Of a stretch of 64,000 bases of DNA, positions 1,124 to 63,917 are shown in pieces. Location: sequence record LR745206.1; one strand, 5' to 3'. The position numbers were made by a program, and so were the translations under genes. The notes below the pieces were generated by a model. The model did not search any database. It had not been told where the DNA came from and saw nothing but the letters and a program-made list of their open reading frames with translations. Numbering within the stretch: position 1 is the first letter of the stretch; each line of letters opens with the position of its first letter.

Positions 1124-1438
1124 TTATTTTTTCAAAATATTATTAATTAATCTATTTCTTTTTTCTTGTTTTGTTTCTGGTTCACCAATAGCTCTTACAT
1201 TAACATCAACAATATCAGTATCATTTGGTAATTGTTTTGTTGATTTTACCCATTTCCAGTCACCTGGTGTCATTTTAGTTTTTTCTTGTTTATGACATAC
1301 ATTACATTTTCGCCACCTTGGTAGTACCTTCCCTTCTATATTACTTCTATCAGAATGTAATCTAACATTCCAATACCTCCATGTGTGTTTACATGTGAGT
1401 TGTTTAAAGTAGAATTTTATTACTTGTAAAATACCCAT
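1124..1438 (-). CDS. hypothetical protein with CxH/CxxC pairs and C-terminal R-x-x-x-I-x-x-IL tag
   Basis: CKH...CNVC; ends KRNRLINNILKK. Confidence 0.7.
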   Translation of the reverse strand: MGILQVIKFYFKQLTCKHTWRYWNVRLHSDRSNIEGKVLPRWRKCNVCHKQEKTKMTPGDWKWVKSTKQLPNDTDIVDVNVRAIGEPETKQEKRNRLINNILKK

Positions 1439-1719
1439 TAGATATTTATTCTTTTGTATTTATTTGATTCAACCCAACTTATTTTGAATCGAGCTGTTCC
1501 ATAGTATCTATTATTGACGAAGCATTCCAATAGATTGGTTTTTTTATTAAAATTAAATTTAACTTTCTTTTTATCACTAGCACCAACAATTTGTGCTACT
1601 TCTAATACGAATATCTTTTTATGTGGTTGAAATTGTGTTTTGAAATTTCCCATAGTTCCTCTAATAGAAATATAGGTTTGCTCAGATTCATTTTCAATTA
1701 AATTTTTTATAAAATCCAC
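1438..1719 (-). CDS. hypothetical protein
   Basis: ORF track; TATATTTG box at 1740-1747. Confidence 0.7.
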   Translation of the reverse strand: MDFIKNLIENESEQTYISIRGTMGNFKTQFQPHKKIFVLEVAQIVGASDKKKVKFNFNKKTNLLECFVNNRYYGTARFKISWVESNKYKRINI

Positions 1720-1763
1720 ATTTTATGATTTAGTTACTGCAAATATAATAAAAAAAATTCAAT

Positions 1764-2255
1764 TTATAACATATCTTTTAATCCTACTAACATTTCACAA
1801 GAAAGACCAGATCTATCTCTAAGATTTACTTCGGTTGATATGTTTTTACCAAAATAGTTAATATCAACTTTTATATAAGCTCTAACAGAAAATCCAGATG
1901 ATGATTTTGACATCTGAACACTTGTTATCTCAGGAAATTGAATTTTTAAATCATTTGTGTATTTCCTTTCTAAGGATTTTTGCTCAACCCTTGTTATTGA
2001 TTTTGGTACATCTATATGATCTAACTCTCTACACTTATTAATCAATTCTTTTGATAGACCCAATTTAGTACCAACTGAGAAATCTATACTTGATGATCTA
2101 GCACCTGTATCGAACTTTGCTTTTACCTCAACTGTTTTACCTTCTCTAGTTAGAGATATTTTGTGTATACCATAGTAAATTTTATCTTTACTAGTATAAT
2201 CCCACTCAACATCACTTGATGATACCCAATCGTTGAATTTTTCTAAATATATCAT
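1764..2255 (-). CDS. retropepsin-like protease (RimK-associated 'ATP-dependent Zn protease' family)
   Basis: KAKFDTGARSSSID (DTG aspartyl motif) and VNLRDRSGLSCEMLVG; N-terminal MIYLEKFND tag. Confidence 0.8.
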   Translation of the reverse strand: MIYLEKFNDWVSSSDVEWDYTSKDKIYYGIHKISLTREGKTVEVKAKFDTGARSSSIDFSVGTKLGLSKELINKCRELDHIDVPKSITRVEQKSLERKYTNDLKIQFPEITSVQMSKSSSGFSVRAYIKVDINYFGKNISTEVNLRDRSGLSCEMLVGLKDML

Positions 2256-2270
2256 TAAGTATATATTATT

Positions 2271-3137
2271 TTACTTACACCATTTATCCACCATCAAGGT
2301 AACTAACCTAAAGAATTTTTTTCTATATTTTGGTAGCCTTTGGTTTATTTTATTTTCAATCAATTTTTTATTTTTCTCTATATCAGTTAATTCTTCTTCA
2401 TTGTAATTATTGAAAGTTGATCTAAATGCCTTTTTAATATATGATTTGATATATGTGAATATGCTATCATATTCATCTTTATAAAAATCTTTTGTGAAAA
2501 CAAATTGGTGGAATAATCTATTTATTTGGCTCTCAGTAAGATGGTTCTCAAACCTAAATTCTTTATCATAAACATACCAAGTCCAAGAAGTATCTGGTGA
2601 TTGTGATAGGAATTTTTCAAATAGATTATATATGTCACTTGGTGTTGGGTTATCTAAAAGGTTGAAATGTAGATAATCTGATATAAATTTATCAAAACTA
2701 ACATAATATCCGTGATATCTTGATTCAAACTCGTTAGTGTCTAATAAGTAGAATATACTTTGCGCGACAATTAATGGGTCATTCTTTTTAAGAATTTTCA
2801 ATTTACTATTTGAAACATGAAATATATCTTTATAGAAGAATTCTTTAACAATTGAATAATCTAGATGTTTTAATTCATGTAGAAATGTTGAATAATCTCT
2901 TCTATCAGAAAGAAGTATAGTCAACTTCTTTGTTGAAGTGTCTTTTTTGAATTGACCATCCAGTTTCTTCACCTTACCAATCTTTAGTGTGAATGGGAAA
3001 TTACCCTTTTTGTTCTTGTATATAAATATGAACTCATTTTTATCACTTGATGATATCTCATTAAAGTATTTTTTAGCTTGTTCTTCCAAATCAGACTTTA
3101 TTCCAAATTTCTCATTAAATGATTGAATATATTTCAT
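2271..3137 (-). CDS. putative HExxH metallopeptidase-like virion protein
   Basis: Likely start MKYIQSFNE at 3137 (track start extends through promoter); FLHELKH plus downstream NEFESR. Confidence 0.5.
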   Translation of the reverse strand: MKYIQSFNEKFGIKSDLEEQAKKYFNEISSSDKNEFIFIYKNKKGNFPFTLKIGKVKKLDGQFKKDTSTKKLTILLSDRRDYSTFLHELKHLDYSIVKEFFYKDIFHVSNSKLKILKKNDPLIVAQSIFYLLDTNEFESRYHGYYVSFDKFISDYLHFNLLDNPTPSDIYNLFEKFLSQSPDTSWTWYVYDKEFRFENHLTESQINRLFHQFVFTKDFYKDEYDSIFTYIKSYIKKAFRSTFNNYNEEELTDIEKNKKLIENKINQRLPKYRKKFFRLVTLMVDKWCK

Positions 3138-3185
3138 GTAGATATATATTAAATAATTTATTATATTTGTAAAAATAAATTTTAA

Positions 3186-3383
3186 ATGAATAAGTTTAAT
3201 AAAGGACAAAAGATATTCTATTTCTTTATGGATAGTCCTTGTCAATCAACGGTAAGTGATTTTTATATAAAGGACAATGATGTTTTTTATATCGATGCTT
3301 TATTTAATAATATAAAGGAGTGTTATGTTTTCAACACTAAGAAAGAATGTGTTGAATACCACAAGAAAAAGTGGTTAGTCTAA
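3186..3383 (+). CDS. hypothetical protein
   Basis: ORF track; TATATTTG at 3162-3169. Confidence 0.6.
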   Translation: MNKFNKGQKIFYFFMDSPCQSTVSDFYIKDNDVFYIDALFNNIKECYVFNTKKECVEYHKKKWLV

Positions 3384-3692
3384 TAGTCTACCTAATTTAT
3401 ATTCTCTGTTTAATTGTTGGAAGTTTTTAACTTTCTCAAGAAGATCGATACATTTAATATGTTTATCATCCATCTGACACCATTGATATTCATTTGATTC
3501 TGATTCTGTGTGTGAATATCCCAATTCATATTTTGATCCGAACATATTAATAGTGAAGAATTCACCACTCTTGTTATCTACACTATCGAATGCCTCAAAA
3601 TCTATATCAATACCAATTTCTTTACCATCACCACACTTTTCATTAAAGATAACGTCTGATAAGTATTTCCATGTTTTATCAAAATCTAACAT
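3375..3692 (-). CDS. hypothetical protein, C-terminal tag
   Basis: ends NREYKLGRLLD. Confidence 0.7.
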   Translation of the reverse strand: MLDFDKTWKYLSDVIFNEKCGDGKEIGIDIDFEAFDSVDNKSGEFFTINMFGSKYELGYSHTESESNEYQWCQMDDKHIKCIDLLEKVKNFQQLNREYKLGRLLD

Positions 3693-4033
3693 AGTATATT
3701 GTTCAGTTTTTCATCCCGTATAGAAATTGAAATATCAGTGATATCAATTTCCTTAACACTTGTTAATAGATTATATATCTCGTTTCTATCATTTCTTAAT
3801 CTGTTTATAACAGCTTCCTCTCCTAGATGGTTGTACATAGAAACCTCATTCAACGTAAACACATCTTTTTGAAACATTTTACTGTTTATTGTATAATAAT
3901 TTGATAATCGTGTTAATACACTAAGCTTATTGAACTCATCAATCATATAACTAATCTGATTTCTTAGTTTTATCACTTCTTTATATCTATTCTTTCTGAA
4001 TATTTTATCAAGTATTGATTGTTTTAGCTTCAT
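3686..4033 (-). CDS. hypothetical protein, C-terminal tag
   Basis: Likely start MKLKQ at 4033 just after TATATTTG (4038-4045); ends IRDEKLNNILC. Confidence 0.7.
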   Translation of the reverse strand: MKLKQSILDKIFRKNRYKEVIKLRNQISYMIDEFNKLSVLTRLSNYYTINSKMFQKDVFTLNEVSMYNHLGEEAVINRLRNDRNEIYNLLTSVKEIDITDISISIRDEKLNNILC

Positions 4034-4273: not shown

Positions 4274-4824
4274 TGAAATATTTAAAAAAATTTGATAGTA
4301 TAAATGAATCCATGAGTAGGGATGGTATGATAAATGTTATCAGAAACATTTTAAAGGAGGTTAATTCTAATACAGAATTGGATAGAAAAACAATGGATAC
4401 AGTAGTCCGTGGATTTGCTGATAAGCTATTTCCAAATGAACCAGATAAAGATTCTTTTTATAATAGTATAATTGGTGAAATTGAGTTTGAATCTAGAAGT
4501 GAAGTTGTTATGATAGATGGTAGAAGTGGTGGGCCAGTAATAGCATATAAACATGACGTTGATAATGATAAGATTTCTTTAACCAACGGTTATTTTTCAG
4601 GAACAGCTTATATTGGTGGTGAAGATGATGAGGATAGGGGAGTAGAGGATTATAGCTCACCTTTTCACAAAGGACAAGTTATACCAAATGATAATTTTGA
4701 TGATGTTGAGGAAATGGACTTTCAATATTCTAGATCAATACCAGATAATATAGTTAGAAAAAATTTAGATGATTATGTTAGTAAAAATTATAATGGTAAG
4801 ATAGTTAAGATTATTTACCATTAA
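4273..4824 (+). CDS. hypothetical protein, N-terminal tag
   Basis: MKYLKKFDSINES. Confidence 0.75.
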   Translation: MKYLKKFDSINESMSRDGMINVIRNILKEVNSNTELDRKTMDTVVRGFADKLFPNEPDKDSFYNSIIGEIEFESRSEVVMIDGRSGGPVIAYKHDVDNDKISLTNGYFSGTAYIGGEDDEDRGVEDYSSPFHKGQVIPNDNFDDVEEMDFQYSRSIPDNIVRKNLDDYVSKNYNGKIVKIIYH

Positions 4825-5239
4825 GCAAATCAGCTAATATAAAATCCCTTTGTATTTCTCTAGGGAATAGTTTTATTATATCCATCTTACTCTTTATTTT
4901 ACGAGCATCCCTACTATTTGAATCATGTACTAATCCAATATATTCTTTCAATGAGGATGATTGTAACCAGACCTTTCTTATAATATCTTTTTCCGTTAAC
5001 ATCCAAACTTTTAAGTTTTCATGCATTTCAAGAATATAAAATGTGCTCCATTTTGGATGTTCAATCTTTTTCTCTGTGTATATCCACTTTTTTAGTGTAT
5101 AATCATATTTTGATTTCCTTTCCATTATATCAGGCACCATATTTTTCTTCCGTGTATTAGAGTCATAATCTTCTTTATGGAATTGACATTTACGGAAACC
5201 CATTTCTGATATTTTTCTTTTTAGGTTCATGATATGCAA
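4811..5239 (-). CDS. hypothetical protein, C-terminal tag
   Basis: ends QRDFILADLLNGK. Confidence 0.7.
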   Translation of the reverse strand: MHIMNLKRKISEMGFRKCQFHKEDYDSNTRKKNMVPDIMERKSKYDYTLKKWIYTEKKIEHPKWSTFYILEMHENLKVWMLTEKDIIRKVWLQSSSLKEYIGLVHDSNSRDARKIKSKMDIIKLFPREIQRDFILADLLNGK

Positions 5240-9454: not shown

Positions 9455-9883
9455 ATGGGTAAATTATATAGTGTTTGTTTAATTAGTAGAACACAAATGA
9501 GAGATATGAGATTGGATTCAATTTTGAATGATGGTGTATTCAACTCTGATACTTACATACATAATGGTGATTTTACATACATTTTTGAATTGAACAATAC
9601 ACTTAGTTCGGACATAACTAAGAATACACTTGTTTATAAGACACTAGGTGGTGCGTTAAGACTTAAAAACAAATTGAGTGATGATTGGGTTATGAAGTTA
9701 AGATATGCTGTTAGAGGTGATGATGGCTCTTGGATTAGAAACCTTAAAAATGATGATAATCATGAGATTGTTATTATTGATATAACTGAAAAATGGGATT
9801 CCTTGATCGATAGTAGAATCGAAATAAAAAGACAATTATTCGAAAAGGAAGTTAGTAGATTAAAATCAAAGAAGTCCAAATAA
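9455..9883 (+). CDS. hypothetical protein with R-D-x-R-L-x-x-IL motif near N-terminus
   Basis: MRDMRLDSILND; TATATTTG at 9444-9451. Confidence 0.7.
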   Translation: MGKLYSVCLISRTQMRDMRLDSILNDGVFNSDTYIHNGDFTYIFELNNTLSSDITKNTLVYKTLGGALRLKNKLSDDWVMKLRYAVRGDDGSWIRNLKNDDNHEIVIIDITEKWDSLIDSRIEIKRQLFEKEVSRLKSKKSK

Positions 9884-13118: not shown

Positions 13119-13859
13119 TTACTTTTTCATTACTTCCTTCTTGTAGTAATCATCAAAACCATCCATCAAACCAGTTATTGAAGTACTTTTATCTGTTATG
13201 ATAATTTCATCAATAAATCCAAAGTCTAAAGCTTCTTGTGAGTTTAACCAATGGTCTCTTCTAGCACTTTCTAATACCTCATCGAATGTTTTGCCACTAT
13301 TTTCAGCTAACATCTTAAATAAGATATAATTATATTTCTCAGATTCTAAGTGTGAAATACGATTATCTTCAACGTGTCCTTGTGCACCACTTGATACTTG
13401 GTGTATCATTACCTTTGAAAAATTCAAAGAAGATCTTTTACCTTTTGTACCGGATGATAATAAAATAGACCCCATCGATGCTGCCATCCCTGTATTAACA
13501 GTCATTACATCAGATTTGATATATCTCATAACATCAACCATACTTAAACCACTCTTAACTGATCCACCAGGTGAATCAATGTGCATAGTTATATCTCTTA
13601 CATCATTTTGATCAAGATACATCAATTGAGCTTGTACAACTGTTGACATATTATCATTAACAACACCAGCAACCCATAATAATCTATCTCTCATTAAACG
13701 TGAGAAAATATCCATTTGTGTTACCCTCATTTCTCTTTCTTCGAGAATGTATGGTGTCATACTGTTTGTATTTTCTAATTGTTTTTGGTAGTAGTGTAGA
13801 TTCATTGAAGATAATCCTTCACTCATCGCATACTTTTTAAAGTCTTTTCCGTGATCCAT
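13119..13859 (-). CDS. clpP: ATP-dependent Clp protease proteolytic subunit (paralog 1)
   Basis: DIFSRLMRDR, IDSPGGSV, GMAASMG (Ser), MIHQ (His), RRDHWL (Asp). Confidence 0.95.
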   Translation of the reverse strand: MDHGKDFKKYAMSEGLSSMNLHYYQKQLENTNSMTPYILEEREMRVTQMDIFSRLMRDRLLWVAGVVNDNMSTVVQAQLMYLDQNDVRDITMHIDSPGGSVKSGLSMVDVMRYIKSDVMTVNTGMAASMGSILLSSGTKGKRSSLNFSKVMIHQVSSGAQGHVEDNRISHLESEKYNYILFKMLAENSGKTFDEVLESARRDHWLNSQEALDFGFIDEIIITDKSTSITGLMDGFDDYYKKEVMKK

Positions 13860-13871: not shown

Positions 13872-14353
13872 TTAATTTAAAATTTCATCGATAGTTTCAT
13901 CTCTTCTATACTTTTTTTCGATAGTTGTTGAGATATCACCAATTATTGATTCCAATGTTTTATTAGTTTCTTCGATCTTTTTGTTTCTTTCTAGATCAAT
14001 TAAGAAATTATATATCTTCTCAATAGTATCTTGATTGGTATCAATTAAAGTTTCGTACTTATCATACCCTCTATCCTTTTCTGATTGGAAAACTAACTCA
14101 TAGTTATAAACACATGGTTTAAACCATCTAGCTTGCTCAAACCTTCTTATTGATACAGAGAAACAATTTATTTTCTCTCCAGATTTTGCGTCTATTGAGT
14201 TTGTTTCGATTAGTTGAAATTTTTACCAGATTTTGTTTCTTCTTGAGAATTGCTTTTTAGTCTAGTTCTTTCTGAACTCTTTATTGATAGAAATATACTA
14301 TCCAATAGCTTTTTTGAATTTTCTTTTGTTATAAAGTCTTTGTTTAATTCCAT
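13872..14353 (-). CDS. frameshifted hypothetical protein (47-aa frame 0 plus 116-codon -1 frame ending in C-terminal tag)
   Basis: ATG at 14353 stops at 14210; ATG-less -1 frame opens at 14222 and ends RRDETIDEILN; junction A_AAT_TTC at 14222-14216. Confidence 0.6.
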
Positions 14354-14755: not shown

Positions 14756-15108
14756 TGTTTAGGGTCATAGGTGGTGTATCTTATCATATATTATGTGATA
14801 GGATACCTATACCATTTCCATTCAGTAAAAGAGGTGAACAACCACCAATAATAGTATTACATGATAATGAAGTTTGTTTAATACGTGATATGGATTTCCA
14901 TTATAATGAAAATACCATAATAACTCTATCATGGTTAATAGAGGATACTAATAAAAAATCTAATGTAAATTGGAGGGATTTAATTTACCAAAAACTCTGG
15001 ATAGAATATTACACAGAGGTTATAAAATTAATGACATCCTATCAAAGGGAAGTTACGATTGATAATATCCTTAGAAAAGAAATTGATTATCAGTATTGGG
15101 TATGTTAA
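14752..15108 (+). CDS. hypothetical protein, C-terminal tag
   Basis: QREVTIDNILRKE near C-terminus. Confidence 0.65.
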   Translation: MMFRVIGGVSYHILCDRIPIPFPFSKRGEQPPIIVLHDNEVCLIRDMDFHYNENTIITLSWLIEDTNKKSNVNWRDLIYQKLWIEYYTEVIKLMTSYQREVTIDNILRKEIDYQYWVC

Positions 15109-19421: not shown

Positions 19422-19775
19422 ATGAAAAAAATGATTCAGTGTGCCAAAATATTTTTTTTTGGGGAGTTAAATAGATGTGATTATAATATTCCGGTTATTG
19501 GTGAATTTGTAGTTGTTAAAAAGTTATTTTATTGGAATGGTTCATTCCATAAACATTGCCCTAGAAAAGATCCTATGAGTAAGCCTTGGTTCTTCACAAT
19601 AAAAAAAGGAGATATATTTGAAATAATTGATATTGAAGAAATAGATGGTGATTGGTTGATATATATGATAGATAAATCTGGTGATCAAATAAATATAAAA
19701 TATTTTGAATCTAGAAAATATTGGCAAACAAAATCCGATATTAGGAATAATATATTAAATAAATTAGGAATATGA
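19422..19775 (+). CDS. hypothetical protein, C-terminal tag
   Basis: Likely start MKKMIQ at 19422; ends IRNNILNKLGI. Confidence 0.7.
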   Translation: MKKMIQCAKIFFFGELNRCDYNIPVIGEFVVVKKLFYWNGSFHKHCPRKDPMSKPWFFTIKKGDIFEIIDIEEIDGDWLIYMIDKSGDQINIKYFESRKYWQTKSDIRNNILNKLGI

Positions 19776-20179
19776 GTCCAGGTAGAAATAATAATGATAT
19801 ATTAACTATTGGTTCTACACAAGCTGTAGGAAGTTACATTGAGGATAAGGAGACAAATTATGAATGGATGGATTACCTTTGTATTTTACTCAAAAGTGGT
19901 AACTATATAACTATTGATGTTGATAATACTGTTGAGTTGAAAAAACCAGATAGGGTATTCGGTCAAAAGTTTGAAAATAGATTCTTCAAATTGAGAGTTG
20001 GTATTAAACCAGGTACTATGTGGACAAAAACATTTGATTATGAGGTTGAGGATTATCAACGTATATTAGTAGATGATGATATAATTTATCGACTAGAGAA
20101 TACAATTGAACCAAACCCAACCTATATAAATGAAATGAAAGCTGAGTTAAGATCATTACAAATTAATAAAATAGTATGA
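19772..20179 (+). CDS. hypothetical protein, C-terminal tag
   Basis: ends LRSLQINKIV. Confidence 0.7.
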   Translation: MSPGRNNNDILTIGSTQAVGSYIEDKETNYEWMDYLCILLKSGNYITIDVDNTVELKKPDRVFGQKFENRFFKLRVGIKPGTMWTKTFDYEVEDYQRILVDDDIIYRLENTIEPNPTYINEMKAELRSLQINKIV

Positions 20180-20400
20180 AGATAGGAGATAGAGTTGTTT
20201 TAAAAGAAAGAGTTGAAATGCACAACATAACATATGAAATTGGTCACCAATTTATAATAGTCGGTTCTGATGATATGCGTGGGTTTGATTTAAGGGATGA
20301 TGATGGTAATATGCTATGTGAAACTAGATTTGTTAAAATGGGATTATTACCTTTATCTGAAATAAGAGATAGAAAAATTGATAAAATATTAAAAAAATGA
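20176..20400 (+). CDS. small SH3-like hypothetical protein, C-terminal tag
   Basis: MKIGDRVVL...; ends IRDRKIDKILKK. Confidence 0.7.
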   Translation: MKIGDRVVLKERVEMHNITYEIGHQFIIVGSDDMRGFDLRDDDGNMLCETRFVKMGLLPLSEIRDRKIDKILKK

Positions 20401-21157: not shown

Positions 21158-21393
21158 GTGAGGAAGAATATAAGAAAATGTTAGAAGAGTTATCTAATAA
21201 AAGGTTTTCTAATAAAAGAATGGTTACTATTAAACCAAGTGGATCCGTTTCCTTATCTGGTCATATATCTGGTGGTATAAATATGGATTTTGCTAGCTTA
21301 TACCCATCAACACAAAGAATGCACTTCCCTACTAAACAAAGTCGGAGAAAGAAGAAAATTCAGAAAGTATTTGATTTAGATAATCCGGTTTAA
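21154..21393 (+). CDS. hypothetical protein
   Basis: ORF track; RRKKKIQKVFD tag variant. Confidence 0.6.
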   Translation: MSEEEYKKMLEELSNKRFSNKRMVTIKPSGSVSLSGHISGGINMDFASLYPSTQRMHFPTKQSRRKKKIQKVFDLDNPV

Positions 21394-21732
21394 TTTGGAT
21401 TCTCTTTTTATTTTGATTATATCATCAGGTGATATTACCAACCTAACGGGATTTATTGTTTCTATCTTCTTGTCAAATGTGTCAAATGTTTGAATCTTAA
21501 TAATATGATTATCACAATATGTATTTCTTTTATCATATCCTATTATTTCATAAGTGAATTTTTTATTACCTGACCAACTTCTATAAATATAACATTTTGA
21601 TCCTATTGGATACCATTTTTCTAATATTGATAATTGGATATTTGTTGGTGTGTGATTGAATCTTAAAGCAGATTCTCTTGAGTGGTCTTCATAATTCCAC
21701 CAAATCAATGATTTTTTACCAAAAGTACTCAT
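21376..21732 (-). CDS. hypothetical protein, C-terminal tag
   Basis: ends KRESKLNRII. Confidence 0.7.
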   Translation of the reverse strand: MSTFGKKSLIWWNYEDHSRESALRFNHTPTNIQLSILEKWYPIGSKCYIYRSWSGNKKFTYEIIGYDKRNTYCDNHIIKIQTFDTFDKKIETINPVRLVISPDDIIKIKRESKLNRII

Positions 21733-26059: not shown

Positions 26060-26295
26060 TCTAATATCTTCCTCAATTTCCATTCTCGATAAACATCTAA
26101 TGTAATAAATAATCTATCTGAATGTATTCCAACTGGTGAGTTGGTATCAACATGAATCAATTCCAAAACAATTCTATCATCAGACATTTCAATAGCATCA
26201 TTGACACTATACTTATCACCAATAATAAGGTTATATTTTTGCCCATATAGTTCATCCTTTGAACAAATTAGAATATCTCCCTTATTATATTTCAT
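26056..26295 (-). CDS. hypothetical protein, C-terminal tag
   Basis: ends YREWKLRKILD; TATATTTG at 26300-26307. Confidence 0.7.
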   Translation of the reverse strand: MKYNKGDILICSKDELYGQKYNLIIGDKYSVNDAIEMSDDRIVLELIHVDTNSPVGIHSDRLFITLDVYREWKLRKILD

Positions 26296-26350: not shown

Positions 26351-26521
26351 TTAGTTTTCTAATACCTTATCGATATTTGATTCCCTAACCTTAGATTTAA
26401 TCCAAGAAGGTTCATTTTCCAAATCTTCTTCTGTGATTCCCAATTGGTTCATAAATACCTCTAATAGATATTTTTTGTTTTCCCAATTATAAGATGGTCT
26501 TGATTCTGATACTTCGTCCAT
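26351..26521 (-). CDS. 56-aa hypothetical protein, C-terminal tag
   Basis: Manual ORF MDEVSESR...VRESNIDKVLEN, below track cutoff. Confidence 0.7.
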   Translation of the reverse strand: MDEVSESRPSYNWENKKYLLEVFMNQLGITEEDLENEPSWIKSKVRESNIDKVLEN

Positions 26522-36043: not shown

Positions 36044-36438
36044 TAAATGGTAAAATATATTTAGTTCAAGCGAATTATGATGATTATGAATCATCATGGT
36101 CTAAGATAATAGGTATTTTTGATAGTATTGACGTTGCTGAAAAACATAAACAAAAATGGGATAATTTTTATAATATAAATAAATCTATTTTTGATGAGCC
36201 TAAAAATTGGAAACCAAATTTAACAGATGGTGATGAAGATGATGATGAATGGATGGAATCAAGAGAATATTGGTCATTAAAATCAAAGTATGATGATATA
36301 TTTCAGTTTAATTCGGTTAGTATAGATGAATTATCAACCAATATTGATTTATTTTTGGATAATGAATTTATAACTGATGCAATGAAAGAATTGTTAATTC
36401 AGTATAATAGAGATTATAAAATAAAAGAAATATTATGA
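36040..36438 (+). CDS. hypothetical protein, C-terminal tag
   Basis: ends NRDYKIKEIL. Confidence 0.7.
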   Translation: MINGKIYLVQANYDDYESSWSKIIGIFDSIDVAEKHKQKWDNFYNINKSIFDEPKNWKPNLTDGDEDDDEWMESREYWSLKSKYDDIFQFNSVSIDELSTNIDLFLDNEFITDAMKELLIQYNRDYKIKEIL

Positions 36439-42267: not shown

Positions 42268-42963
42268 GTGAGAGAATCATTTGATGAATATAAGAAAACA
42301 ATAGAGAATAATTTCTCTAATTTTACATATTTATATGATGGTGATGTTAAATCATCATCAGATGAGTCATATTCTGAAATTGTAACTCATAAAAATACAT
42401 CACCTACTGTTATAATAAATTGTATTATTGATATTTATAATTTAAGTATAAATAATATGATTGGAAACTCAAGTGACTATATAATATCGGATGATTTAAA
42501 GTCACTTAAATCGAATGCTATAAATCATCAAGGTAGTATTTTACACCATCTTGATAATTTACATAAAGAATTAAAATTTGACCCAACTTATATTTTTACT
42601 TCTGTTAATGGTAGGTCTATGTTTTTACCAATAAGAAGTCTACCGACAAATAAACCATTTCCTGATTATTTCTATGAATTACAGAGATATAACAATAAGG
42701 GTTATGATTTATACCTTTGTCCTGTTATTGAAGATTCGGAGGATGAAGTTTCTGTTTATGTAACTGATAAATCCATACAAAGTTTGGTCTATTCAATCCA
42801 AAATATGGATTATGTTGTTGAAGAATATAATGGTTTGTATAGACATACAATAAATTATAATTTTTATGATTGTGATTTTAAGTGTTATAGGTTATTAGTA
42901 AAAGATTTATTGAAAATAAGGGATGATAAAATTAATCAGATATTAGATGATAATAAATTGTAA
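42268..42963 (+). CDS. hypothetical protein, C-terminal tag
   Basis: GTG start; ends IRDDKINQILDDNKL. Confidence 0.7.
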   Translation: MRESFDEYKKTIENNFSNFTYLYDGDVKSSSDESYSEIVTHKNTSPTVIINCIIDIYNLSINNMIGNSSDYIISDDLKSLKSNAINHQGSILHHLDNLHKELKFDPTYIFTSVNGRSMFLPIRSLPTNKPFPDYFYELQRYNNKGYDLYLCPVIEDSEDEVSVYVTDKSIQSLVYSIQNMDYVVEEYNGLYRHTINYNFYDCDFKCYRLLVKDLLKIRDDKINQILDDNKL

Positions 42964-43339
42964 TGATATAGATATTGGAATATCTAAGAGTTTAAATGGG
43001 TTACATAAGTTGAAATCCAATAAATTAGTAAAAGATTTAGTTGAAATTAGTAATATGGAACCTAAAAGAAGCTATATGGTAACATCGATGAATGTTTTTA
43101 ATATAATAGAAAATCATAATAATTTCGAGCCTAGATATTTAGATAAGAAGAATGAACTAACATCTATAAATTTAGTTGGTAGTATATTGGGTATTGATTG
43201 TTATGTAGATCTATACATGAAAGATGATAATATATTACTATATTATGACAAACAATATGCTCGTGATCTAAAGATAGAATCTATATTAGATGGTGTTCCT
43301 GTTAAGGATGAAAAAATTGAAATTAAGGTATATCTTTAA
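42947..43339 (+). CDS. hypothetical protein, possible capsid-fold fragment, with tag
   Basis: YMVTSMNVFNIIE...LVGSILGIDCYVDLYM resembles a gp23 segment; ARDLKIESILDG. Confidence 0.45.
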   Translation: MIINCNDIDIGISKSLNGLHKLKSNKLVKDLVEISNMEPKRSYMVTSMNVFNIIENHNNFEPRYLDKKNELTSINLVGSILGIDCYVDLYMKDDNILLYYDKQYARDLKIESILDGVPVKDEKIEIKVYL

Positions 43340-58829: not shown

Positions 58830-60440
58830 TTATAAATTTATTTTGATTACTTTATAAGGGTATTTTCTCTTATTGTAGAATTTTTCTCTTTCCTTGAAAT
58901 GTCTATAAAGTATATTATTCATGTTATTGGGATCATAAATATCAACTAGGTCAAATATCATAGCTTTTTCTTTATCACTATGTAAACGAAGAGCTCTACC
59001 GATTGATTGTATTATAATTTGTTCCGACTTAAAAGAATCTGTGAATATAACATTAAATATTGCATTTATCGAAACACCTGTTGATAATGTACCATAAGAT
59101 GCGATTAATACCTTAACATTATCACCGGTATTCTCCATTTCTTTCTTAATGATCTCTCTCTTTTTACCACTAACTCCACCATCAATATAGTAGAAATCTT
59201 TATTTGTTAGTTCTTTTTGTAATTTATTAAATATTTTTTGACCATACTCAATTGTGTGGAATAATAGTAAGGTATTTGTATCACACTTCTCAACTATCTT
59301 TTTTATAAAATCTAACCTTTTATCAGATATGTGTATATAATCCTTTTCTATTTCAAAAGCCTCTTTACCATATCCACCTTTCCTTATTTGTTCCATCCTA
59401 TCCGCAAATTCCAGGTCATTGTGGTTCATTATAACAGCCTTTATCTCCATTGGTGATATAATACCCTTTTTCTTCAATTCATCAGCAGAAACTTCTGTTA
59501 TCTTTGGGCCAAGAACTGCTTGTATTGTTAGTATCTCACACCCTTCATCATCCGGGAAAGTACCAGATACTCCAAATCTAGAATAAGCTTTACCAAAAGT
59601 CTTTTGTAGTATAGTTGTTATTGTCTTGGCTTTTGCTCCGTGTGCTTCATCAGTAACAACCGTGTGAAATTGTTGGAAGAATTCTTTTGGCCATTTTTCC
59701 AAAGATTGATATGTTCCTATATAGATATTAGCATCTTGTTGACCTGAATACTTTCTTGGCCTTTCTGACATTACTTCTTCAACTCTAACATCACAAGGTA
59801 CATGAGTTCCATTTAGTATATGATCTATCTTTTTATCCCTCATCTCATCTAAATTATTAGCACCATTATTATATTCGATGATATTATCATAGAATTGTGT
59901 TACTAATGTTATTGATGGTACAATTATTAAGAATTTAGCCTTAGGATCCATATTCTTTAATGTATAGAACATCACAATTGATATGATTAATGATTTACCA
60001 CCTGATGTAGCAACCTCAGCCATACAATATCTATTTTTTAGAATTTTAAAAGCTGATTCTACTTGATGATCATATGGTTTGAATGGTATCCATTTACCTT
60101 CTTTGGTTTTAACCTTATGTTCTTTGAAGAATTCATCACAGAAACTTTTAACCTTTTCTAGTGTAACATCTCTATTTAAAGGAAAGTCTTCTTTATTTTC
60201 TAATATGAATGGTGCTTCTATTTCTTGGCATCCCCTCATTGCTTCTTTCCAAAGTCCAATATTTATTCTACCATTTCTAAAGTATGTTTGTTGTCCATTC
60301 CACACACCTAATTTAAATGCTGGCATATATCTATAACCTTTAACATGTCTAGTTAGCCACAAACTTAATTGATGGTATTCTATTCTAGTAGCTTCGGTTA
60401 CAACAATTTCCTCTGTTTCCTTTTCATATCTAAACTTCAT
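58830..60440 (-). CDS. uvsW: UvsW-like SF2 DNA helicase
   Basis: ATSGGKS (Walker A), IVPSITLVTQ, TYQSL, TDEAH, GVSGT, YIDGGV, STGVSI, QSIGRALR. Confidence 0.9.
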   Translation of the reverse strand: MKFRYEKETEEIVVTEATRIEYHQLSLWLTRHVKGYRYMPAFKLGVWNGQQTYFRNGRINIGLWKEAMRGCQEIEAPFILENKEDFPLNRDVTLEKVKSFCDEFFKEHKVKTKEGKWIPFKPYDHQVESAFKILKNRYCMAEVATSGGKSLIISIVMFYTLKNMDPKAKFLIIVPSITLVTQFYDNIIEYNNGANNLDEMRDKKIDHILNGTHVPCDVRVEEVMSERPRKYSGQQDANIYIGTYQSLEKWPKEFFQQFHTVVTDEAHGAKAKTITTILQKTFGKAYSRFGVSGTFPDDEGCEILTIQAVLGPKITEVSADELKKKGIISPMEIKAVIMNHNDLEFADRMEQIRKGGYGKEAFEIEKDYIHISDKRLDFIKKIVEKCDTNTLLLFHTIEYGQKIFNKLQKELTNKDFYYIDGGVSGKKREIIKKEMENTGDNVKVLIASYGTLSTGVSINAIFNVIFTDSFKSEQIIIQSIGRALRLHSDKEKAMIFDLVDIYDPNNMNNILYRHFKEREKFYNKRKYPYKVIKINL

Positions 60441-60918: not shown

Positions 60919-61550
60919 TATTCCATTATTTTCTGAATCTTATAATCTCTTAGGTATGATCTAAACTTACCTTCAAAATATTCCTTACCTTTCTCATTAT
61001 CCTTACCCATTCTCTCTATCATCTTATTTAAGAATCTATCAAGTGGTTGATTTGTGTGTAAGTTATTTATATTTAAACCAGGTCCTAAATATCGATTAAA
61101 TATCTTTAGTAGTTTAGTTGAGTTTTGTGTATTTGATTTTTCACTATTATATAATTCTCTTTCTATTTCACAATATAAGTGTTTTATTGCATTAACAGTA
61201 TCCTCATTAGATGTTACCAATTCCATATCCATCTCATTACATTCATGTAATTTTACCCAAAATTTAGCACCACCCAATTCAATGTTATGTTCTCTTTCAA
61301 CCTTCTCAGCTTTTGTTTTAGCCTTTGGTACGGAAAATGTTATTGAACTAAACTGTGATAGACCTTTTCTTATATAAACTCTATCAATTTTAATTACTAA
61401 TCCCTTTGGTAGTTCTATTACTGTTGCGTTATTAAACGGAATATTCATTTTATTGAACATTTCTCTATTTCGGTATTCACCATATAATGTTATTGTCCAA
61501 TTTTCTTCTAACCTTATTAGTGTTCCTATATCTGGGATAAATAGTTTCAT
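60918..61550 (-). CDS. hypothetical protein, C-terminal tag
   Basis: MKLFIPDIGT...; ends LRDYKIQKIME. Confidence 0.75.
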   Translation of the reverse strand: MKLFIPDIGTLIRLEENWTITLYGEYRNREMFNKMNIPFNNATVIELPKGLVIKIDRVYIRKGLSQFSSITFSVPKAKTKAEKVEREHNIELGGAKFWVKLHECNEMDMELVTSNEDTVNAIKHLYCEIERELYNSEKSNTQNSTKLLKIFNRYLGPGLNINNLHTNQPLDRFLNKMIERMGKDNEKGKEYFEGKFRSYLRDYKIQKIME

Positions 61551-61555
61551 ATTTT

Positions 61556-62221
61556 TTATTTTCTTTTTATTAAGATTTCATCAATCATACCATATCTTTT
61601 AGCATCCTGTGCATTCATCCAATAATCTCTATCTCCGTCTTTTTGTACTTTATTATATGTTTGACCAGTTCTATCTGATATTATATCATATAATTCTTTT
61701 TTTAATGAGTTTATTTCTTTGGCTTCTATCTCTATATCGGATGCTTGTTGCATCCACCCACCACCAATAGGTTGGTGTATCATTGTTCTGCTTCTTTTCA
61801 AAGCTTTTCTCTTACCTTTCTCACCAGAACAGAGTATTATAGCACCCATTGATGCTGCTAATCCAGTATTAACTGTAGCTATATCTGGTTTTATGAAATC
61901 CATAACATCAAGTAATCCAAGTCCAGAATAAACTGATCCTCCCGGACTATCAATATAAATTGATATATCATCATCACTTTCTGATTCTAAATAGAGTAAT
62001 TGAGCTTTTATTATATTACAGATGTAATCATCTATCTCAGTTGATAGGAATATTATTCTCTCATCTAATAATTTAGAAAAAACATCAATAGGCATATCAT
62101 TATCACTTAGTACATTTGGTGTGTTATTTTTCTTCTGTATATGTTTGAAATAGTCATTGGTGTATAAACTACCTATTGATTTACTAAGTAGGTAATTTTG
62201 AAAGTCTTTAGATTGATTCAT
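61556..62221 (-). CDS. clpP: ATP-dependent Clp protease proteolytic subunit (paralog 2)
   Basis: DVFSKLLDERIIF, IDSPGGSVY, GLAASMG, MIHQP, GDRDYWM. Confidence 0.95.
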   Translation of the reverse strand: MNQSKDFQNYLLSKSIGSLYTNDYFKHIQKKNNTPNVLSDNDMPIDVFSKLLDERIIFLSTEIDDYICNIIKAQLLYLESESDDDISIYIDSPGGSVYSGLGLLDVMDFIKPDIATVNTGLAASMGAIILCSGEKGKRKALKRSRTMIHQPIGGGWMQQASDIEIEAKEINSLKKELYDIISDRTGQTYNKVQKDGDRDYWMNAQDAKRYGMIDEILIKRK

Positions 62222-62318
62222 TTATCAAAGTTATTTTTTAGTTTTATGTATTTATTATATGAATGTTTATTAAAAGTGGGTTTATGTTTTTAATATATAA
62301 TAAAAAAATAAGTATTAT

Positions 62319-62606
62319 ATGAAAACTAAAGTTGAAATTAATGGATACGAAATCGAGATCGAAGAAAAAGATGGTCTTATTATCGTAAAAGCTGAGAAAG
62401 ACGAAGAAATTGTTGAAGAATTCACAATTGAAATGGAAGAAGGTGAAGAAGGACAAGATGAGGTTCAAGGATTTGAAGACTTCGAAGGTGGTGAAGAAGA
62501 AGGTGACTTTGACGGAGACGACTCAGAAGGTGAAGAATTTGGAGACGAAGACGAATCTAAATTAGAGTCTTTCCAATCTTTTGTTAACAAGAACATAAAA
62601 AAATAA
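62319..62606 (+). CDS. highly acidic small protein
   Basis: E/D-rich tract; ends KLESFQSFVNK; TAATATATA at 62291-62299. Confidence 0.75.
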   Translation: MKTKVEINGYEIEIEEKDGLIIVKAEKDEEIVEEFTIEMEEGEEGQDEVQGFEDFEGGEEEGDFDGDDSEGEEFGDEDESKLESFQSFVNKNIKK

Positions 62607-62616
62607 ATCTTAATTA

Positions 62617-63672
62617 ATGATTAAGAAATTTAATCAATTTCTAGAAAATAACAATTCTAGATACCTGCTATACTATGCTTTCGACTGGGATGATAATATA
62701 TTAAACATGCCGACTGTAATACATATGGATAAGAGGGTTGGTGAATCTTGGGTACCTACTGATGTATCAACTGCTGAATTTGCAGAAGTTCGTGGGTCTG
62801 ATGATTATAGGATATTAAATAACAACCCTGATGAAGCATTCTCTGAATTTAGAGATTTTGGTCCAAGAGGTATGGAAGCGTTTTTGATAGATGTGAAATC
62901 AGCTATTAAACAAAAAAGATTTGGTCCTGCTTGGGATGATTTCATTGAATGTTTGAGTAATGGTTGTGTATTTGCTATAATAACAGCTAGAGGTCATGAG
63001 CCAGAAGCTATTAGATTAGGTATAGAGTGGATAATAGACAATGTTATGACTGAGGAAGAGGTTTATGAAATGTATAATAACCTATTAAAATTTGAATATG
63101 TATTTGATAGAGAAGAGGGTGATAAAATACTTAGAGGTAAACCCTCTGAGAATGTATCATTCCGTAAATACTTAGATCAATGTGATTTGGTTGGGGTTTC
63201 ATCACCATCAAGAGGTGGTGCTCCGGATAATCCAGAAAAGTCCAAAGAAGAAGCTTTGTTGGAATTTAAAGAAAAGGTTAATAATTATGCGTCTAGAATC
63301 GGTGTTAAAGCTAAAGTTGGATTTTCTGATGATGATTTGAAAAATGTTAAACACATCGAAGACCTAATTGATAATTTAAATCATGAACAATTCCCAAATA
63401 TAATTGAATATGTTGTTAAGGGAACAAAAGATCCATCATCTATAACTAAAAAGGTTAGAACTATGAGTGAAGGATCACAAACTACTGGGTTAGAATCGTC
63501 TGTTTTACCGTTTACACAATTTAATAATATGACAAATAAATTGTACCCAAAGGGTCCGGATAATAGGCAAGATGATTTTGCTAATGAGTTTAGAAGACAA
63601 TCTGAGTATTTAGCAAAAACTTCAAAAGAAACTTTAGATAAAAAAAATATTAAAAATAAAAAATCCTCTTAA
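62617..63672 (+). CDS. HAD-superfamily-like protein, N-terminal tag
   Basis: AFDWDDNIL, IITARGH, GFSDDD; MIKKFNQFLEN. Confidence 0.65.
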   Translation: MIKKFNQFLENNNSRYLLYYAFDWDDNILNMPTVIHMDKRVGESWVPTDVSTAEFAEVRGSDDYRILNNNPDEAFSEFRDFGPRGMEAFLIDVKSAIKQKRFGPAWDDFIECLSNGCVFAIITARGHEPEAIRLGIEWIIDNVMTEEEVYEMYNNLLKFEYVFDREEGDKILRGKPSENVSFRKYLDQCDLVGVSSPSRGGAPDNPEKSKEEALLEFKEKVNNYASRIGVKAKVGFSDDDLKNVKHIEDLIDNLNHEQFPNIIEYVVKGTKDPSSITKKVRTMSEGSQTTGLESSVLPFTQFNNMTNKLYPKGPDNRQDDFANEFRRQSEYLAKTSKETLDKKNIKNKKSS

Positions 63673-63684
63673 AGAGGATTTTTT
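63658..63684. terminator. bidirectional intrinsic terminator
   Basis: AAAAAATCCTCT-TAA-AGAGGATTTTTT. Confidence 0.85.
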
Positions 63685-63917
63685 TTATCTATAATTTTAT
63701 TTAATTTCTCATCTCTCACTATTTGCTTCTCATTTAGATGATACCATCCTCTAAAATCATGTATATAATAAACATAATTAATTACTTTACCATTCTCATC
63801 AACATCAGCGGTACAAGTTGAACCAAACATAAATTTTTTAAAACTTTCAAACCATTCAGTAGGTATTTCATAGTCCCTAACATCAGTTCCTCTGTCATAT
63901 AACTCTTTTGCTGTCAT
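63669..63917 (-). CDS. hypothetical protein, C-terminal tag
   Basis: ends VRDEKLNKIIDKK; TATATTTG at 63923-63930. Confidence 0.7.
   Translation of the reverse strand: MTAKELYDRGTDVRDYEIPTEWFESFKKFMFGSTCTADVDENGKVINYVYYIHDFRGWYHLNEKQIVRDEKLNKIIDKKNPL

Follow-up and report, generated by a model that had tools for sequence, protein, structure and literature searches.

A predicted C-terminal helix recurs on otherwise unrelated proteins of a 635-kb phage and resembles an address label

Results

Instances of the motif in the window

The window analysed here corresponds to bases 62001-126000 (64,000 nucleotides) of the uncultured 634,780-bp phage LR745206.1. Examination of its coding capacity revealed 24 copies of the motif R-[DEN]-x-K-[IL]-x-x-[IL]-[ILG], of which 19 lie within 10 residues of a stop codon. 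The preliminary description had claimed a shared C-terminal peptide on about 24 otherwise unrelated proteins, and every instance that it listed is present at the end of its ORF; the observation is therefore confirmed, and it is much larger than first reported. The strict pattern R[DE].K[IL]..[IL][ILM] gave 12 hits in the six-frame translation of the window, all of them in long ORFs and 10 of them within 6 residues of the stop, whereas none was found in a non-coding frame and about 0.05 hits are predicted from residue composition for the coding residues of the window. A position matrix trained on the whole genome, with a threshold of about 1 false hit per genome, returned 23 hits in the window which, together with the ORF ending at 13872, make 24 instances in 23 ORFs.

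In the first part of the window, the tag is carried on the minus strand by ORF 1124-1438 (104 aa; RNRLINNIL at 1133..1159, 2 aa before the stop, matrix score 23.4), ORF 3375-3692 (105 aa; REYKLGRLL at 3381..3407, 1 aa before the stop, strict pattern, score 18.9), ORF 3686-4126 (146 aa; RDEKLNNIL at 3692..3718, 1 aa before the stop, strict pattern, score 17.7) and ORF 4811-5239 (142 aa; RDFILADLL at 4823..4849, 3 aa before the stop, core pattern, score 14.4). The plus-strand ORF 9455-9883 (142 aa) has an N-terminal copy, RDMRLDSIL, at 9500..9526 (residues 16-24, score 18.9). RDETIDEIL (13878..13904, minus strand, score 18.4) lies 1 aa before the stop of the open frame 13872-14222, directly upstream of ClpP2, although this frame has no canonical start codon over most of its length. 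On the plus strand, REVTIDNIL (15046..15072, score 16.0) lies 11 aa before the stop of ORF 14752-15108 (118 aa).

A group of plus-strand instances follows, with the variant RNNILNKLG-I ('LGI' ending; 19743..19769, score 19.2) at the end of ORF 19299-19775, the weak variant RSLQINKIV (20150..20176, score 16.5) at the very end of ORF 19772-20179 (135 aa), RDRKIDKIL (20365..20391, score 28.5) 2 aa before the stop of ORF 20176-20400 (74 aa) and the variant RKKKIQKVF (21346..21372, score 17.0) 6 aa before the stop of ORF 21154-21393 (79 aa). On the minus strand, RESKLNRII (21379..21405, strict pattern) is at the very end of ORF 21376-21732 (118 aa), REWKLRKIL (26062..26088, strict pattern) lies 1 aa before the stop of ORF 26056-26295 (79 aa), and RESNIDKVL (26360..26386, score 17.4), which is kept in the LR756502 orthologue, lies 2 aa before the stop of ORF 26351-26521 (56 aa). 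The plus-strand ORF 26587-27294 (235 aa) has two copies, an internal RDFNLTEIL (26842..26868, score 18.6) and RDEKIKVIL (27250..27276, strict pattern) 5 aa before the stop.

The minus-strand ORF 32400-33047 (215 aa, with membrane segments) ends in the variant RENFLNKIG-IK (32409..32435, score 18.0), also kept in the LR756502 orthologue. On the plus strand, RSRRLNEIL (36014..36040, score 17.4) is at the very end of ORF 35504-36043 (179 aa, with an N-terminal membrane helix), RDYKIKEIL (36409..36435, strict pattern) at the very end of ORF 36040-36438 (132 aa), and RDDKINQIL (42919..42945) 5 aa before the stop of ORF 42268-42963 (231 aa). The latter gene is overlapped at its end by ORF 42947-43339 (130 aa, plus strand), in which RDLKIESIL (43262..43288, strict pattern) lies 16 aa before the stop and is kept in LR756502 and in IMG/VR relatives. 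A further internal copy, RDKKIDHIL (59814..59840, minus strand, strict pattern), to which we assign no clear meaning, lies inside the DEAD-box helicase 58830-60440 (536 aa), identified by its helicase domains. Finally, also on the minus strand, RDYKIQKIM (60924..60950) lies 1 aa before the stop of ORF 60918-61550 (210 aa), directly downstream of ClpP1, and RDEKLNKII (63690..63716, strict pattern) 6 aa before the stop of ORF 63669-63917 (82 aa).

The two ClpP genes noted in the preliminary description are indeed present, both on the minus strand: ClpP2 at 13119..13859 (246 aa, PF00574 E=6.6e-54, 39.6% identity to ClpP1) and ClpP1 at 61556..62221 (221 aa, PF00574 E=8.4e-68).

Genome-wide distribution and relatives

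Enrichment at C-termini had been proposed beforehand as a touchstone for the motif, and it was examined in the whole genome (13 pieces, 923 genes in our own gene call) as well as in other phages. The strict pattern gave 65 hits against 0.52 in residue shuffles; 54 of these lie within 8 aa of the C-terminus against 0.015 expected, none lies at an N-terminus and none appears in reversed sequences. The matrix gave 171 hits in 168 proteins, 143 of them within 10 aa of the end, and twelve more hits, all C-terminal, fall in ORFs that the gene call had dropped. In total, about 170-185 of about 920-980 predicted proteins, or about one in five, carry the motif against roughly 1 expected by chance, which amounts to 29% of all proteins of 60-160 aa. 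Tagged genes cluster, with 55 adjacent pairs against 29.3 +/- 4.4 expected.

Two relatives, LR756502 and LR756504, have the tag. A loose template was found near the C-termini of 185/983, 52/208 and 60/360 proteins in the three tag-bearing genomes, against 14.5, 3.7 and 5.4 in shuffles, while a third Mahaphage, Lak-A1 and PTm1 lack the tag, with only background levels in LR756501 (3/236), PTm1 (1/85) and Lak-A1 (0/136). LR745206 and LR756502 have D/E/N at position 2 and K at position 4, followed by 1-2 further residues. In LR756504 the consensus has shifted in concert, with K at position 2 (29/60, D/E only 3/60) and E/D at position 7, and 42/60 copies end exactly at position 9; this shift spans 40 independent clusters.

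Selection at the protein level and modularity of the carriers

Conservation at the DNA level only was the alternative set out in advance, and codon use speaks against it. Arg codon use in the tag (AGA 0.69, AGG 0.19, CGN 0.12) mirrors that of the genome (0.77, 0.12, 0.11), nine different codons occur at each I/L position, and what follows the tag varies from an overlapping start to a terminator or a convergent gene.

The carriers are otherwise unrelated, as had been claimed. An all-against-all BLASTP found nothing shared except the motif and, with the tag removed, 139 carriers form 137 clusters at E<0.01 with both BLASTP and phmmer. Pfam hits were obtained for 6 of 142 carriers and PHROG hits for 12 of 142, every hit to a different family. 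Carrier lengths run from 35 to 731 aa. Homologous domains exist without the tag in LR756504 and in unrelated phages such as Xanthomonas phage XaC1, whose 108-aa protein matches residues 1-112 of the 210-aa carrier 60918-61550.

Two different folds were predicted, each followed by a terminal helix of lower confidence than the core and directly abutting the last strand of the domain. In ORF 20176-20400, whose orthologues keep the tag while residues after the motif are free to vary, the AF2 model shows an SH3-like barrel (supported by SH3 matches) followed by helix 60-73. The conserved protein 42268-42963 is predicted to adopt an HK97 (capsid/encapsulin-like) fold (AF2 pLDDT 90.2) with a terminal helix at 214-228, and its Foldseek hits are only capsid or encapsulin proteins. 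The tag is kept in 120/120 of its homologues and in 47/52 diverged cluster representatives, R218 and I222 being invariant.

Only 6% of carriers have a membrane segment; most of these segments are N-terminal and, in the cases inspected, followed by basic residues, which points to the cytoplasmic side.

Promoter classes and the N-terminal label

The claim that carriers are early proteins behind host-type promoters is partly supported. In total, 47/168 carriers lie in transcription units with the Bacteroidota-type TAnnTTTG box, against 129/755 other genes (p=0.002), and carriers are depleted behind the phage-specific ATATATA motif that precedes structural genes (36/168 against 147/398 other small genes, p=3e-4). 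However, 46% of carriers have no recognisable promoter, our gene calls and promoter classes are home-made, and one conserved carrier, the capsid-fold protein, lies behind the ATATATA motif. A second, N-terminal label occurs on 57 proteins; as had been noted, it never shares a protein with the C-terminal tag (0/57, p=1e-5). It has the same phylogenetic distribution and sits behind a different, late-type promoter.

Discussion

The motif is the core of a predicted free-standing helix of about 14 residues, preceded by a capping box ([ST]-x-x-[ED]-hydrophobic) and ending either in a polar residue or in a Gly-hydrophobic cap (the 'LGI' variant). On a helical wheel, the invariant Arg and the frequent Lys at +3 sit in the middle of the hydrophobic face (positions -1, 5, 8, 9), an arrangement that fits a specific protein-protein docking surface but neither a membrane anchor nor a plain coiled coil. 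We read this element as a modular docking or address helix, appended mostly at the C-terminus to about 170-185 otherwise unrelated small cytoplasmic proteins, that binds one common receptor which co-evolves with it and is therefore probably phage-encoded (probability about 0.65). Protein-level selection, modularity, the concerted shift by lineage, the distribution among genomes, the expression class and the exclusion of the N-terminal label are results of the present analysis, whereas the docking function and the identity of the receptor are inferred, no interaction having been tested or modelled. The interpretation in the preliminary description is thus partly supported: selection at the protein level on what is predicted to be a helix, its phage-wide occurrence and its presence on unrelated proteins all hold, but the sequence evidence, which supports a common co-evolving partner, does not name that partner nor choose between a degron, a docking helix and a localisation signal. 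We found no published description of such a proteome-wide label in a phage, in agreement with the preliminary description.

The main rival is that the helix is a cargo-loading peptide which docks its carrier onto a capsid-fold assembly, either the prohead or a separate shell built from the small HK97-fold protein, so that tagged small proteins would be enclosed and possibly delivered with the DNA. The architecture is that of known loading peptides, namely a short terminal helix on unrelated cargo, occasionally at the N-terminus, and the conserved HK97-fold protein carries this helix and is translationally coupled to a second tagged gene next to the baseplate genes. Carriers are small, fast-evolving orphans, as expected of injected counter-defence proteins, and large enzymes and tail or baseplate proteins are not tagged. 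We nevertheless consider this reading doubtful, since the shell-like protein itself bears the tag instead of only receiving it, carriers show the promoter bias described above, and the N-terminal label with its late-type promoters is the more natural head-targeting signal. Moreover, tblastn did not detect the HK97-fold protein in tag-bearing LR756504, the neighbouring small genes are untagged in a distant relative that has the protein, and about 170 different cargo species would be without precedent. Docking to some other hub, such as the phage Hsp70 (full-length, E=3.4e-250), a polymerase, the ribosome or translation factors the phage encodes, an unknown phage scaffold or a host protein, would concentrate or regulate the accessory proteins and is equally tentative. 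All the evidence for a common partner applies to it and the genome also encodes elongation-factor-like proteins and many tRNA synthetases, but no candidate stands out. Replication proteins (two family-B polymerases, ligase, topoisomerase) are not carriers, which argues against a sliding clamp, and a highly conserved host hub would not explain the acid-to-base flip at position 2 between related phages, unless their hosts differ.

It is less likely that there is no common partner and that the helix is a generic self-association or fold-stabilising element reused by this lineage, for example for dimerisation of small proteins or pairing among tagged proteins. The capped, autonomous helix, the clustering of tagged genes and the presence of the tag on a self-assembling capsid-fold protein are compatible with this view, but an invariant Arg and a Lys in the middle of a hydrophobic face of only three or four residues are atypical for a coiled coil, a purely structural element would not shift its charged positions in concert across 40 unrelated families in one lineage, and homologous domains fold without it. 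Common descent of all carriers from one very old paralogous family is close to refuted by the clustering, the range of lengths, the two predicted folds, the different families hit and the tag-free homologues, although some local arrays look like diverged paralogues: one LR756502 protein matches two members of the run 374589-376200, and LR756504 has clusters of 7, 5, 4 and 3 carriers. A nucleic-acid signal (promoter, translational coupling or termination element) that only happens to be translated, as could be suspected from the several tags lying just before overlapping start codons of the next gene, is refuted by the codon data; the in-frame position of all strict hits in the window, the heterogeneous downstream context, the variable distance to the stop (0 to 10 codons) and the N-terminal and internal copies also speak against it.

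As to the receptor, our preferred candidate, which is inferred and to which we give a probability of only about 0.3, is the phage's own Clp machine, consisting of a two-ring ClpC-like unfoldase that lacks the usual N-domain and the ClpP1/ClpP2 pair. The genome encodes, in addition to both ClpP proteins, a 701-aa ClpC-like protein with AAA, lid, UVR, AAA_2 and D2-small domains, no Clp_N domain and a VGF tripeptide taken, without a test, to be the ClpP-docking loop. Each of the three tag-bearing genomes has two ClpP places, while LR756501 appears to have none and Lak has one. All three Clp genes have a carrier as a direct neighbour (about p=0.04 by our estimate) and one carrier shares the UVR motif of the ClpC-like middle region. 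In contrast, classical Clp recognition signals are unstructured and depend on the extreme terminus, whereas here 0-10 variable residues follow the motif, N-terminal and internal copies exist and the element is a capped helix, which argues against a degron in its classical form. The Clp link is not specific either, as ClpA/C-like genes are common in jumbo phages that lack the tag, including tag-free LR756501/3, and Lak has a ClpP but no tag. The N-domain missing from the ClpC-like protein is the one that normally receives adaptors and substrates, ClpP1 itself sits behind a host-type box, which does not suit late-onset clearance, and a capsid-fold protein behind the late-type motif, one of the best-conserved carriers, is an odd substrate for a protease. 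On this reading, the tag would mark a whole class of mostly early accessory proteins for collective turnover or sequestration, and the mutually exclusive N-terminal label would mark a different, late class.

Occurrence of the tag in the window and in the whole genome

LR745206.1 is an unannotated 634,780-bp assembly of an uncultured phage, which we infer to be among the largest phage genomes of the 'Mahaphage' group (Al-Shayeb et al. 2020, PMC7162821). The G+C content is 27-33%. A SusC-like TonB-dependent receptor gene in the window and two proteins with type IX secretion CHU_C domains elsewhere point to a Bacteroidota host. A 10-kb stretch of the window is 100% identical to the record; the window corresponds to record bases 62001-126000, and the rest of the genome was analysed in 13 separate pieces.

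Examination of the six-frame translation of the window revealed 12 occurrences of the strict pattern R[DE].K[IL]..[IL][ILM], whereas residue composition predicts about 0.05. All 12 are in frame in long ORFs and 10 lie within 6 residues of the stop. A position matrix with a threshold of about one false hit per genome allowed us to identify 24 instances in 23 ORFs, nineteen of them within 10 residues of the stop. The observation made in the preliminary description, a C-terminal motif shared by about 24 otherwise unrelated proteins, holds: every ORF that it named is confirmed, as are the N-terminal copy in ORF 9455 and the internal copies in ORFs 26587 and 42947. One tagged open frame of 116 codons, 13872-14222 (-), has no canonical start codon over most of its length and a short ORF in another frame lies just upstream; it may use an unusual start or be broken once, and the frames were not joined. 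A perfect copy of the motif at 59814-59840 lies inside the DEAD-box helicase domain of 58830-60440 (-), far from either terminus, and could be due to chance, since about 0.5 strict hits are expected genome-wide, or could be a functional insertion.

A gene call made for this work yielded 923 genes covering 92% of the sequence. Enrichment at C-termini over shuffled sequences had been proposed in advance as a test of the tag, and it was found: the strict pattern gives 65 hits against 0.52 in shuffles, of which 54 lie within 8 residues of the C-terminus against 0.015 expected. The iterated matrix gives 171 hits in 168 proteins, 143 of them within 10 aa of the C-terminus, 7 within the first 35 residues and 21 internal. 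Twelve more hits, all C-terminal, fall in ORFs which the gene call had dropped and which are probably real genes. The carriers are small proteins; they make up 29% of all proteins of 60-160 aa but only 5 of 208 proteins of 250 aa or more. They are spread over the whole genome, with the highest density at both ends of the record, and are adjacent to each other more often than expected by chance (55 adjacent pairs against 29.3 +/- 4.4).

Structure of the tag and level of selection

Column counts for the 185 hits of a loose template (see below) are R 185 at position 1 (fixed by the template), D 76, E 35 and N 30 at position 2, K 117 at position 4, I 89 and L 87 at position 5, N 57, K 34 and D 29 at position 6, I 92 and L 68 at position 8, L 97, G 33, I 26 and F 21 at position 9, and K, I, D or N at position 10. 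Most chains end by position 11 (83 of 185 have no residue there). Upstream of the motif, T/S are favoured at position -5, K or an aliphatic residue at -4, S/Q at -3, E at -2 and I/L/Y at -1, which we read as a helix N-capping box. The 'LGI' ending corresponds to a Gly-hydrophobic helix cap, and since orthologues switch between '...IL' and '...LGI', the two endings are equivalent. On a helical wheel, Arg1 and Lys4 lie inside the arc formed by the hydrophobic positions -1, 5, 8 and 9. As there are only three or four hydrophobic positions and charged residues lie inside the hydrophobic face, a membrane anchor was rejected. A protease site of the L/I-x-E type before the tag was also considered, but Glu is found at position -2 in only 21% of the LR745206 tags and a helix capping box explains the pattern better. 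A subfamily of mini-proteins of 35-75 aa carries the variant R-K-x-K-I-x-x-I-F and consists of little more than this tag variant, for example at record positions 255010-255367, 261394-261501, 482039-482179, 598645-598758 and 608315-608455. These mini-ORFs could be real competitor or regulator peptides, or artefacts of gene calling.

Conservation at the DNA level only had been named beforehand as an outcome that would count against the tag, and the codon data rule it out. Arg codons in the tag are AGA 0.69, AGG 0.19 and CGN 0.12, compared with 0.77, 0.12 and 0.11 genome-wide, and the I/L positions use nine different codons. Downstream of the tag there may be an overlapping start, a hairpin terminator or a convergent gene.

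Tag-bearing proteins are otherwise unrelated

With the tag removed, 139 C-terminal carriers form 137 clusters at E<0.01. Pfam and PHROG searches of 142 carriers, and of 10 of the larger ones, gave almost nothing: only 6 of 142 hit any Pfam family and 12 of 142 any PHROG, every hit being to a different family. A weak hit to Gp23 (E=2e-4) was not traced to its carrier among these results. A database search with the last 40 residues of the 74-aa carrier 20176-20400 returned only 7 orthologues and says nothing about the distribution of the tag, because the motif carries too few bits for a billion-sequence search. This carrier is predicted as an SH3-like barrel followed by helix 60-73, and its orthologues keep the tag and vary freely after it. 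The 231-aa carrier 42268-42963 is predicted with high confidence (pLDDT 90.2) as an alpha/beta core followed by helix 214-228, which has lower confidence than the core. Three carriers have homologues in LR756504 that end without a tag. Moreover, the 210-aa carrier 60918-61550 shares residues 1-112 with a complete 108-aa protein of Xanthomonas phage XaC1 and with rhizobial phage proteins, none of which extends into the tag.

Distribution among related phages and concerted change

Relatives were found with a conserved 605-aa protein, and a loose template, R-x3-h-x2-h-(h or G-h), was scored within 10 aa of the end of their proteins. The template is present in 185/983 proteins of LR745206 (14.5 expected from shuffles), 52/208 of LR756502 (3.7 expected) and 60/360 of LR756504 (5.4 expected). 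In contrast, it is found in 3/236 proteins of LR756501 (3.7 expected), 1/85 of Tenacibaculum phage PTm1 (1.6 expected) and 0/136 of Prevotella phage Lak-A1 (1.4 expected), with TAG read as sense or as stop in the latter. The loci of more distant relatives (L030, L032-L034) cover structural regions with few small genes, so that they test the spread of the tag poorly. In LR756504 the consensus is shifted as a whole: position 2 is K in 29/60 (D/E in only 3/60), position 4 is K in 29 or I in 21, position 5 is I in 55, position 7 is E/D in 31, position 8 is L in 48, and forty-two of the 60 end exactly at position 9. These 60 carriers fall into 40 clusters. A simultaneous shift across unrelated families is what a shared, co-evolving partner predicts, whereas a merely structural helix does not predict it.

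A tag-bearing protein with a predicted capsid-like fold

The model of 42268-42963 (+) matches only HK97-fold major capsid, vertex and encapsulin shell proteins, with 17 PDB hits at E<1e-3 and 41 BFVD hits, and TM 0.37-0.51 overall. This assignment rests on fold comparison alone, since the protein has no Pfam match at E<=0.01 and no PHROG or PDB sequence match, and a sequence search of the family against solved structures returned only chance hits. All 120 listed homologues (41-94% identity) keep the tag; in an alignment of 63 sequences R218 and I222 are invariant, and K221 and L226 reach 98%. A scan of 1.84 billion proteins showed that at least 97 clusters at 50% identity exist in metagenomes, and 47 of 52 full-length cluster representatives keep the tag. 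A tblastn search did not find the protein in LR756504. The gene lies beside baseplate genes, behind the ATATATA motif described below, and its end overlaps a second tagged gene. We have no explanation for the presence of the same helix on a protein of this predicted fold.

Promoter classes and a second, N-terminal label

An upstream motif specific to the phage, ATATATA in the context TTTA-ATATATA-A, occurs in 164 of 370 upstream regions against 12.9 expected. It mostly lies 20-30 nt or 0-10 nt before the start codon, precedes the baseplate and other structural genes (for example upstream of window positions 42268, 47554 and 60440), and is probably the late or phage-polymerase promoter. The Bacteroidota-type box TAnnTTTG is also enriched. 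Carriers are depleted in ATATATA units (36/168 against 147/398 other small genes, p=3e-4) and enriched in host-type units (47/168 against 129/755, p=0.002).

Independently, 57 of the 923 proteins begin with M-K-[YH]-[LI]-K-x-[FY]-x-E, against 0.5 expected; in the window they are encoded at 4070-4273(+), 4273-4824(+), 30348-30626(+), 38692-39378(-) and 45658-46086(-). None of these 57 proteins is a C-tag carrier (p=1e-5), and thirty of the 42 with an assignable transcription unit are in ATATATA units. This label has the same phylogenetic distribution as the C-terminal tag, being found in 32/208 proteins of LR756502 and 16/360 of LR756504, but in 0/236 of LR756501, 0/136 of Lak and 1/85 of PTm1.

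Clp genes and other gene content

The window holds ClpP1 (61556-62221) and ClpP2 (13119-13859), which match PF00574 (E=8e-68 and 7e-54) and are 39.6% identical. Elsewhere (record 423224-425329, L009:31224-33329, where L009 is a piece of the record), the genome encodes a 701-aa ClpC-like two-ring protein with AAA and AAA_2 domains, a UVR motif and a VGF tripeptide, which we take to be the ClpP-docking loop, but without a Clp_N domain. A full-length Hsp70 and a PrkA/DUF444 pair are also encoded. Each of the three Clp genes has a carrier as a direct neighbour, and a 99-aa carrier (record 296085-296384, L007:2085-2384) contains a UVR motif that is 71% identical over 21 residues to the middle region of the ClpC-like protein. 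LR756502 and LR756504 also show two ClpP places each. As a co-occurrence marker, however, the Clp genes are weak: the ClpA/C-like gene is widespread in jumbo phages and present in tag-free LR756501/3, Lak has a ClpP without the tag, and the absence of ClpP from LR756501 is inferred only from organism counts in the search results.

The phage also carries host-like envelope genes (window 15454-18102 (-); L001:15115-17613), one coding for an 882-aa SusC-type TonB-dependent receptor-like protein with CarboxypepD_reg and Plug domains and two for PKD/CHU_C type IX secretion cargo proteins. A run of metabolic and lipid genes at window 22331-26059 codes for an NAMPT-like protein, a NUDIX hydrolase and a patatin-like phospholipase. 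Nearby are a PrsW-family membrane protease (28142-28867) and two lysozyme-type genes, GH19 with a peptidoglycan-binding domain (27309-28112) and GH108 (34496-35470).

Comparison with known terminal signals

Encapsulin cargo-loading peptides are short C-terminal peptides on unrelated cargo proteins that bind an HK97-fold shell. The tag shares the short C-terminal position on otherwise unrelated proteins, and this genome does have a small protein of predicted HK97 fold with fold-level matches to encapsulin shells. However, the tag is a predicted capped amphipathic helix with an invariant Arg, about 170 carriers are scattered over 635 kb instead of one to a few cargo genes beside the shell gene, and the capsid-fold protein, which could not be assigned to the encapsulin families, itself carries the tag. 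The encapsulation peptides of bacterial microcompartments are short amphipathic helices at either terminus of unrelated cargo, attached by a short linker, and pair with a terminal helix of a shell protein, which would parallel the tag on the capsid-fold protein. In agreement with this architecture, the predicted helices 60-73 and 214-228 follow the last strand after 1-2 residues, and N-terminal copies of the tag exist. In a scan that was not exhaustive, no microcompartment shell genes were seen among the window proteins or the 88 large proteins, small proteins outside the window not being scanned; the number of carriers is far larger, and the setting is a virus.

The capsid targeting leader of T4-type internal head proteins and the coat-binding helices of scaffolds also direct otherwise unrelated small proteins to one phage assembly, and this phage has a T4-type portal. 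The T4-type leader is N-terminal and removed by the prohead protease, whereas the tag is C-terminal in 143 of 171 cases (its cleavage was not examined) and a separate N-terminal label exists on other proteins. PIP-box and bacterial clamp-binding motifs have the same spacing (polar, two free residues, aliphatic, two free residues, two hydrophobic residues), prefer protein termini and occur on many unrelated partners of one hub. The tag nevertheless has an invariant Arg and no conserved Gln, with I/L/V at positions 8-9 where the PIP box has an aromatic pair. Its carriers are orphan small proteins rather than replication or repair enzymes, the polymerases, ligase, topoisomerase and recombinase of this genome having been found in the non-carrier set. 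The type IX secretion C-terminal domain of Bacteroidota is a folded domain of about 80-100 aa matching the CHU_C or Por_Secre_tail profiles, while the tag is about 14 aa and has no Pfam hit, and the two CHU_C proteins of the genome are large non-carriers. Host-targeting motifs of eukaryotic pathogens and dockerin modules of cellulosomes are conceptual parallels, in which one short shared element marks a large, fast-evolving and otherwise unrelated repertoire for one destination; organisms, positions, sequences and machineries are all different and the likeness lies in the logic only.

The recognition signals (degrons) of Clp proteases and their adaptors are short terminal labels, mostly C-terminal and sometimes N-terminal, on unrelated proteins, and a cognate unfoldase and peptidase set is encoded by the phage. 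In these signals the extreme terminus and its free carboxylate are decisive, whereas 0-10 variable residues follow the motif, orthologues differ in tail length, and 7 N-terminal and 21 internal copies exist. Degrons are also unstructured; here AF2 predicts a helix in two carriers at pLDDT 66-77 and the capping-box and Gly-cap patterns suggest a stable helix, but these are predictions and not measurements, and they do not settle whether the peptide is folded. Protein stability and binding were not measured, and no phage-encoded degron acting on a whole class of proteins is known to us.

Interpretation

The preliminary description had interpreted the motif as a phage-wide addressing label on early proteins, such as a degron, a docking helix or a localisation signal, and this interpretation is partly supported. 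The sequence data demonstrate a protein-level, modular and lineage-specific terminal element, predicted to be helical, on about a fifth of the proteome. That it is a docking label for one co-evolving partner goes beyond these data but is a strong inference, to which we give a probability of about 0.65. A phage Clp machine is our preferred receptor because of the gene set and the neighbouring carriers, but only tentatively, as ClpA/C-like genes occur in many tag-free jumbo phages and the tag does not look like a classical degron. A capsid-type shell, mainly supported by the tag on the protein of predicted HK97 fold, and some other hub are both possible but somewhat less likely still. No description of such a label was found in the literature searched, and the preliminary description likewise knew of none.

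A bolder hypothesis, which is compatible with the data but doubtful at present, is that a clade of huge Bacteroidota phages runs its own two-label protein-sorting code. One label would be the N-terminal M-K-[YH]-[LI]-K-x-[FY] leader on about 6% of proteins, which are late and structural-type, and the other the C-terminal capped helix on about 18-20% of proteins, mostly early accessory proteins. Each label would be read by a dedicated, co-evolving and phage-encoded receptor, and the virus would then partition a quarter of its proteome between destinations such as particle, protease or compartment, much as a cell sorts proteins with signal sequences.

Short terminal address peptides are known for a handful of cargo proteins in encapsulins, microcompartments, T4 internal proteins and degrons, but none is known to mark a fifth of a viral proteome. 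If the tag is what it appears to be, it gives a sequence-only handle on about 170 orphan proteins per genome which share a fate and a partner, it turns the question of what the hundreds of small genes of huge phages are for into a tractable search for one receptor, and it offers a natural, portable 14-residue docking helix with lineage-specific variants. It also shows that these phages have a class structure in their proteome, with two mutually exclusive labels tied to two promoter types, which gene-by-gene annotation misses entirely.
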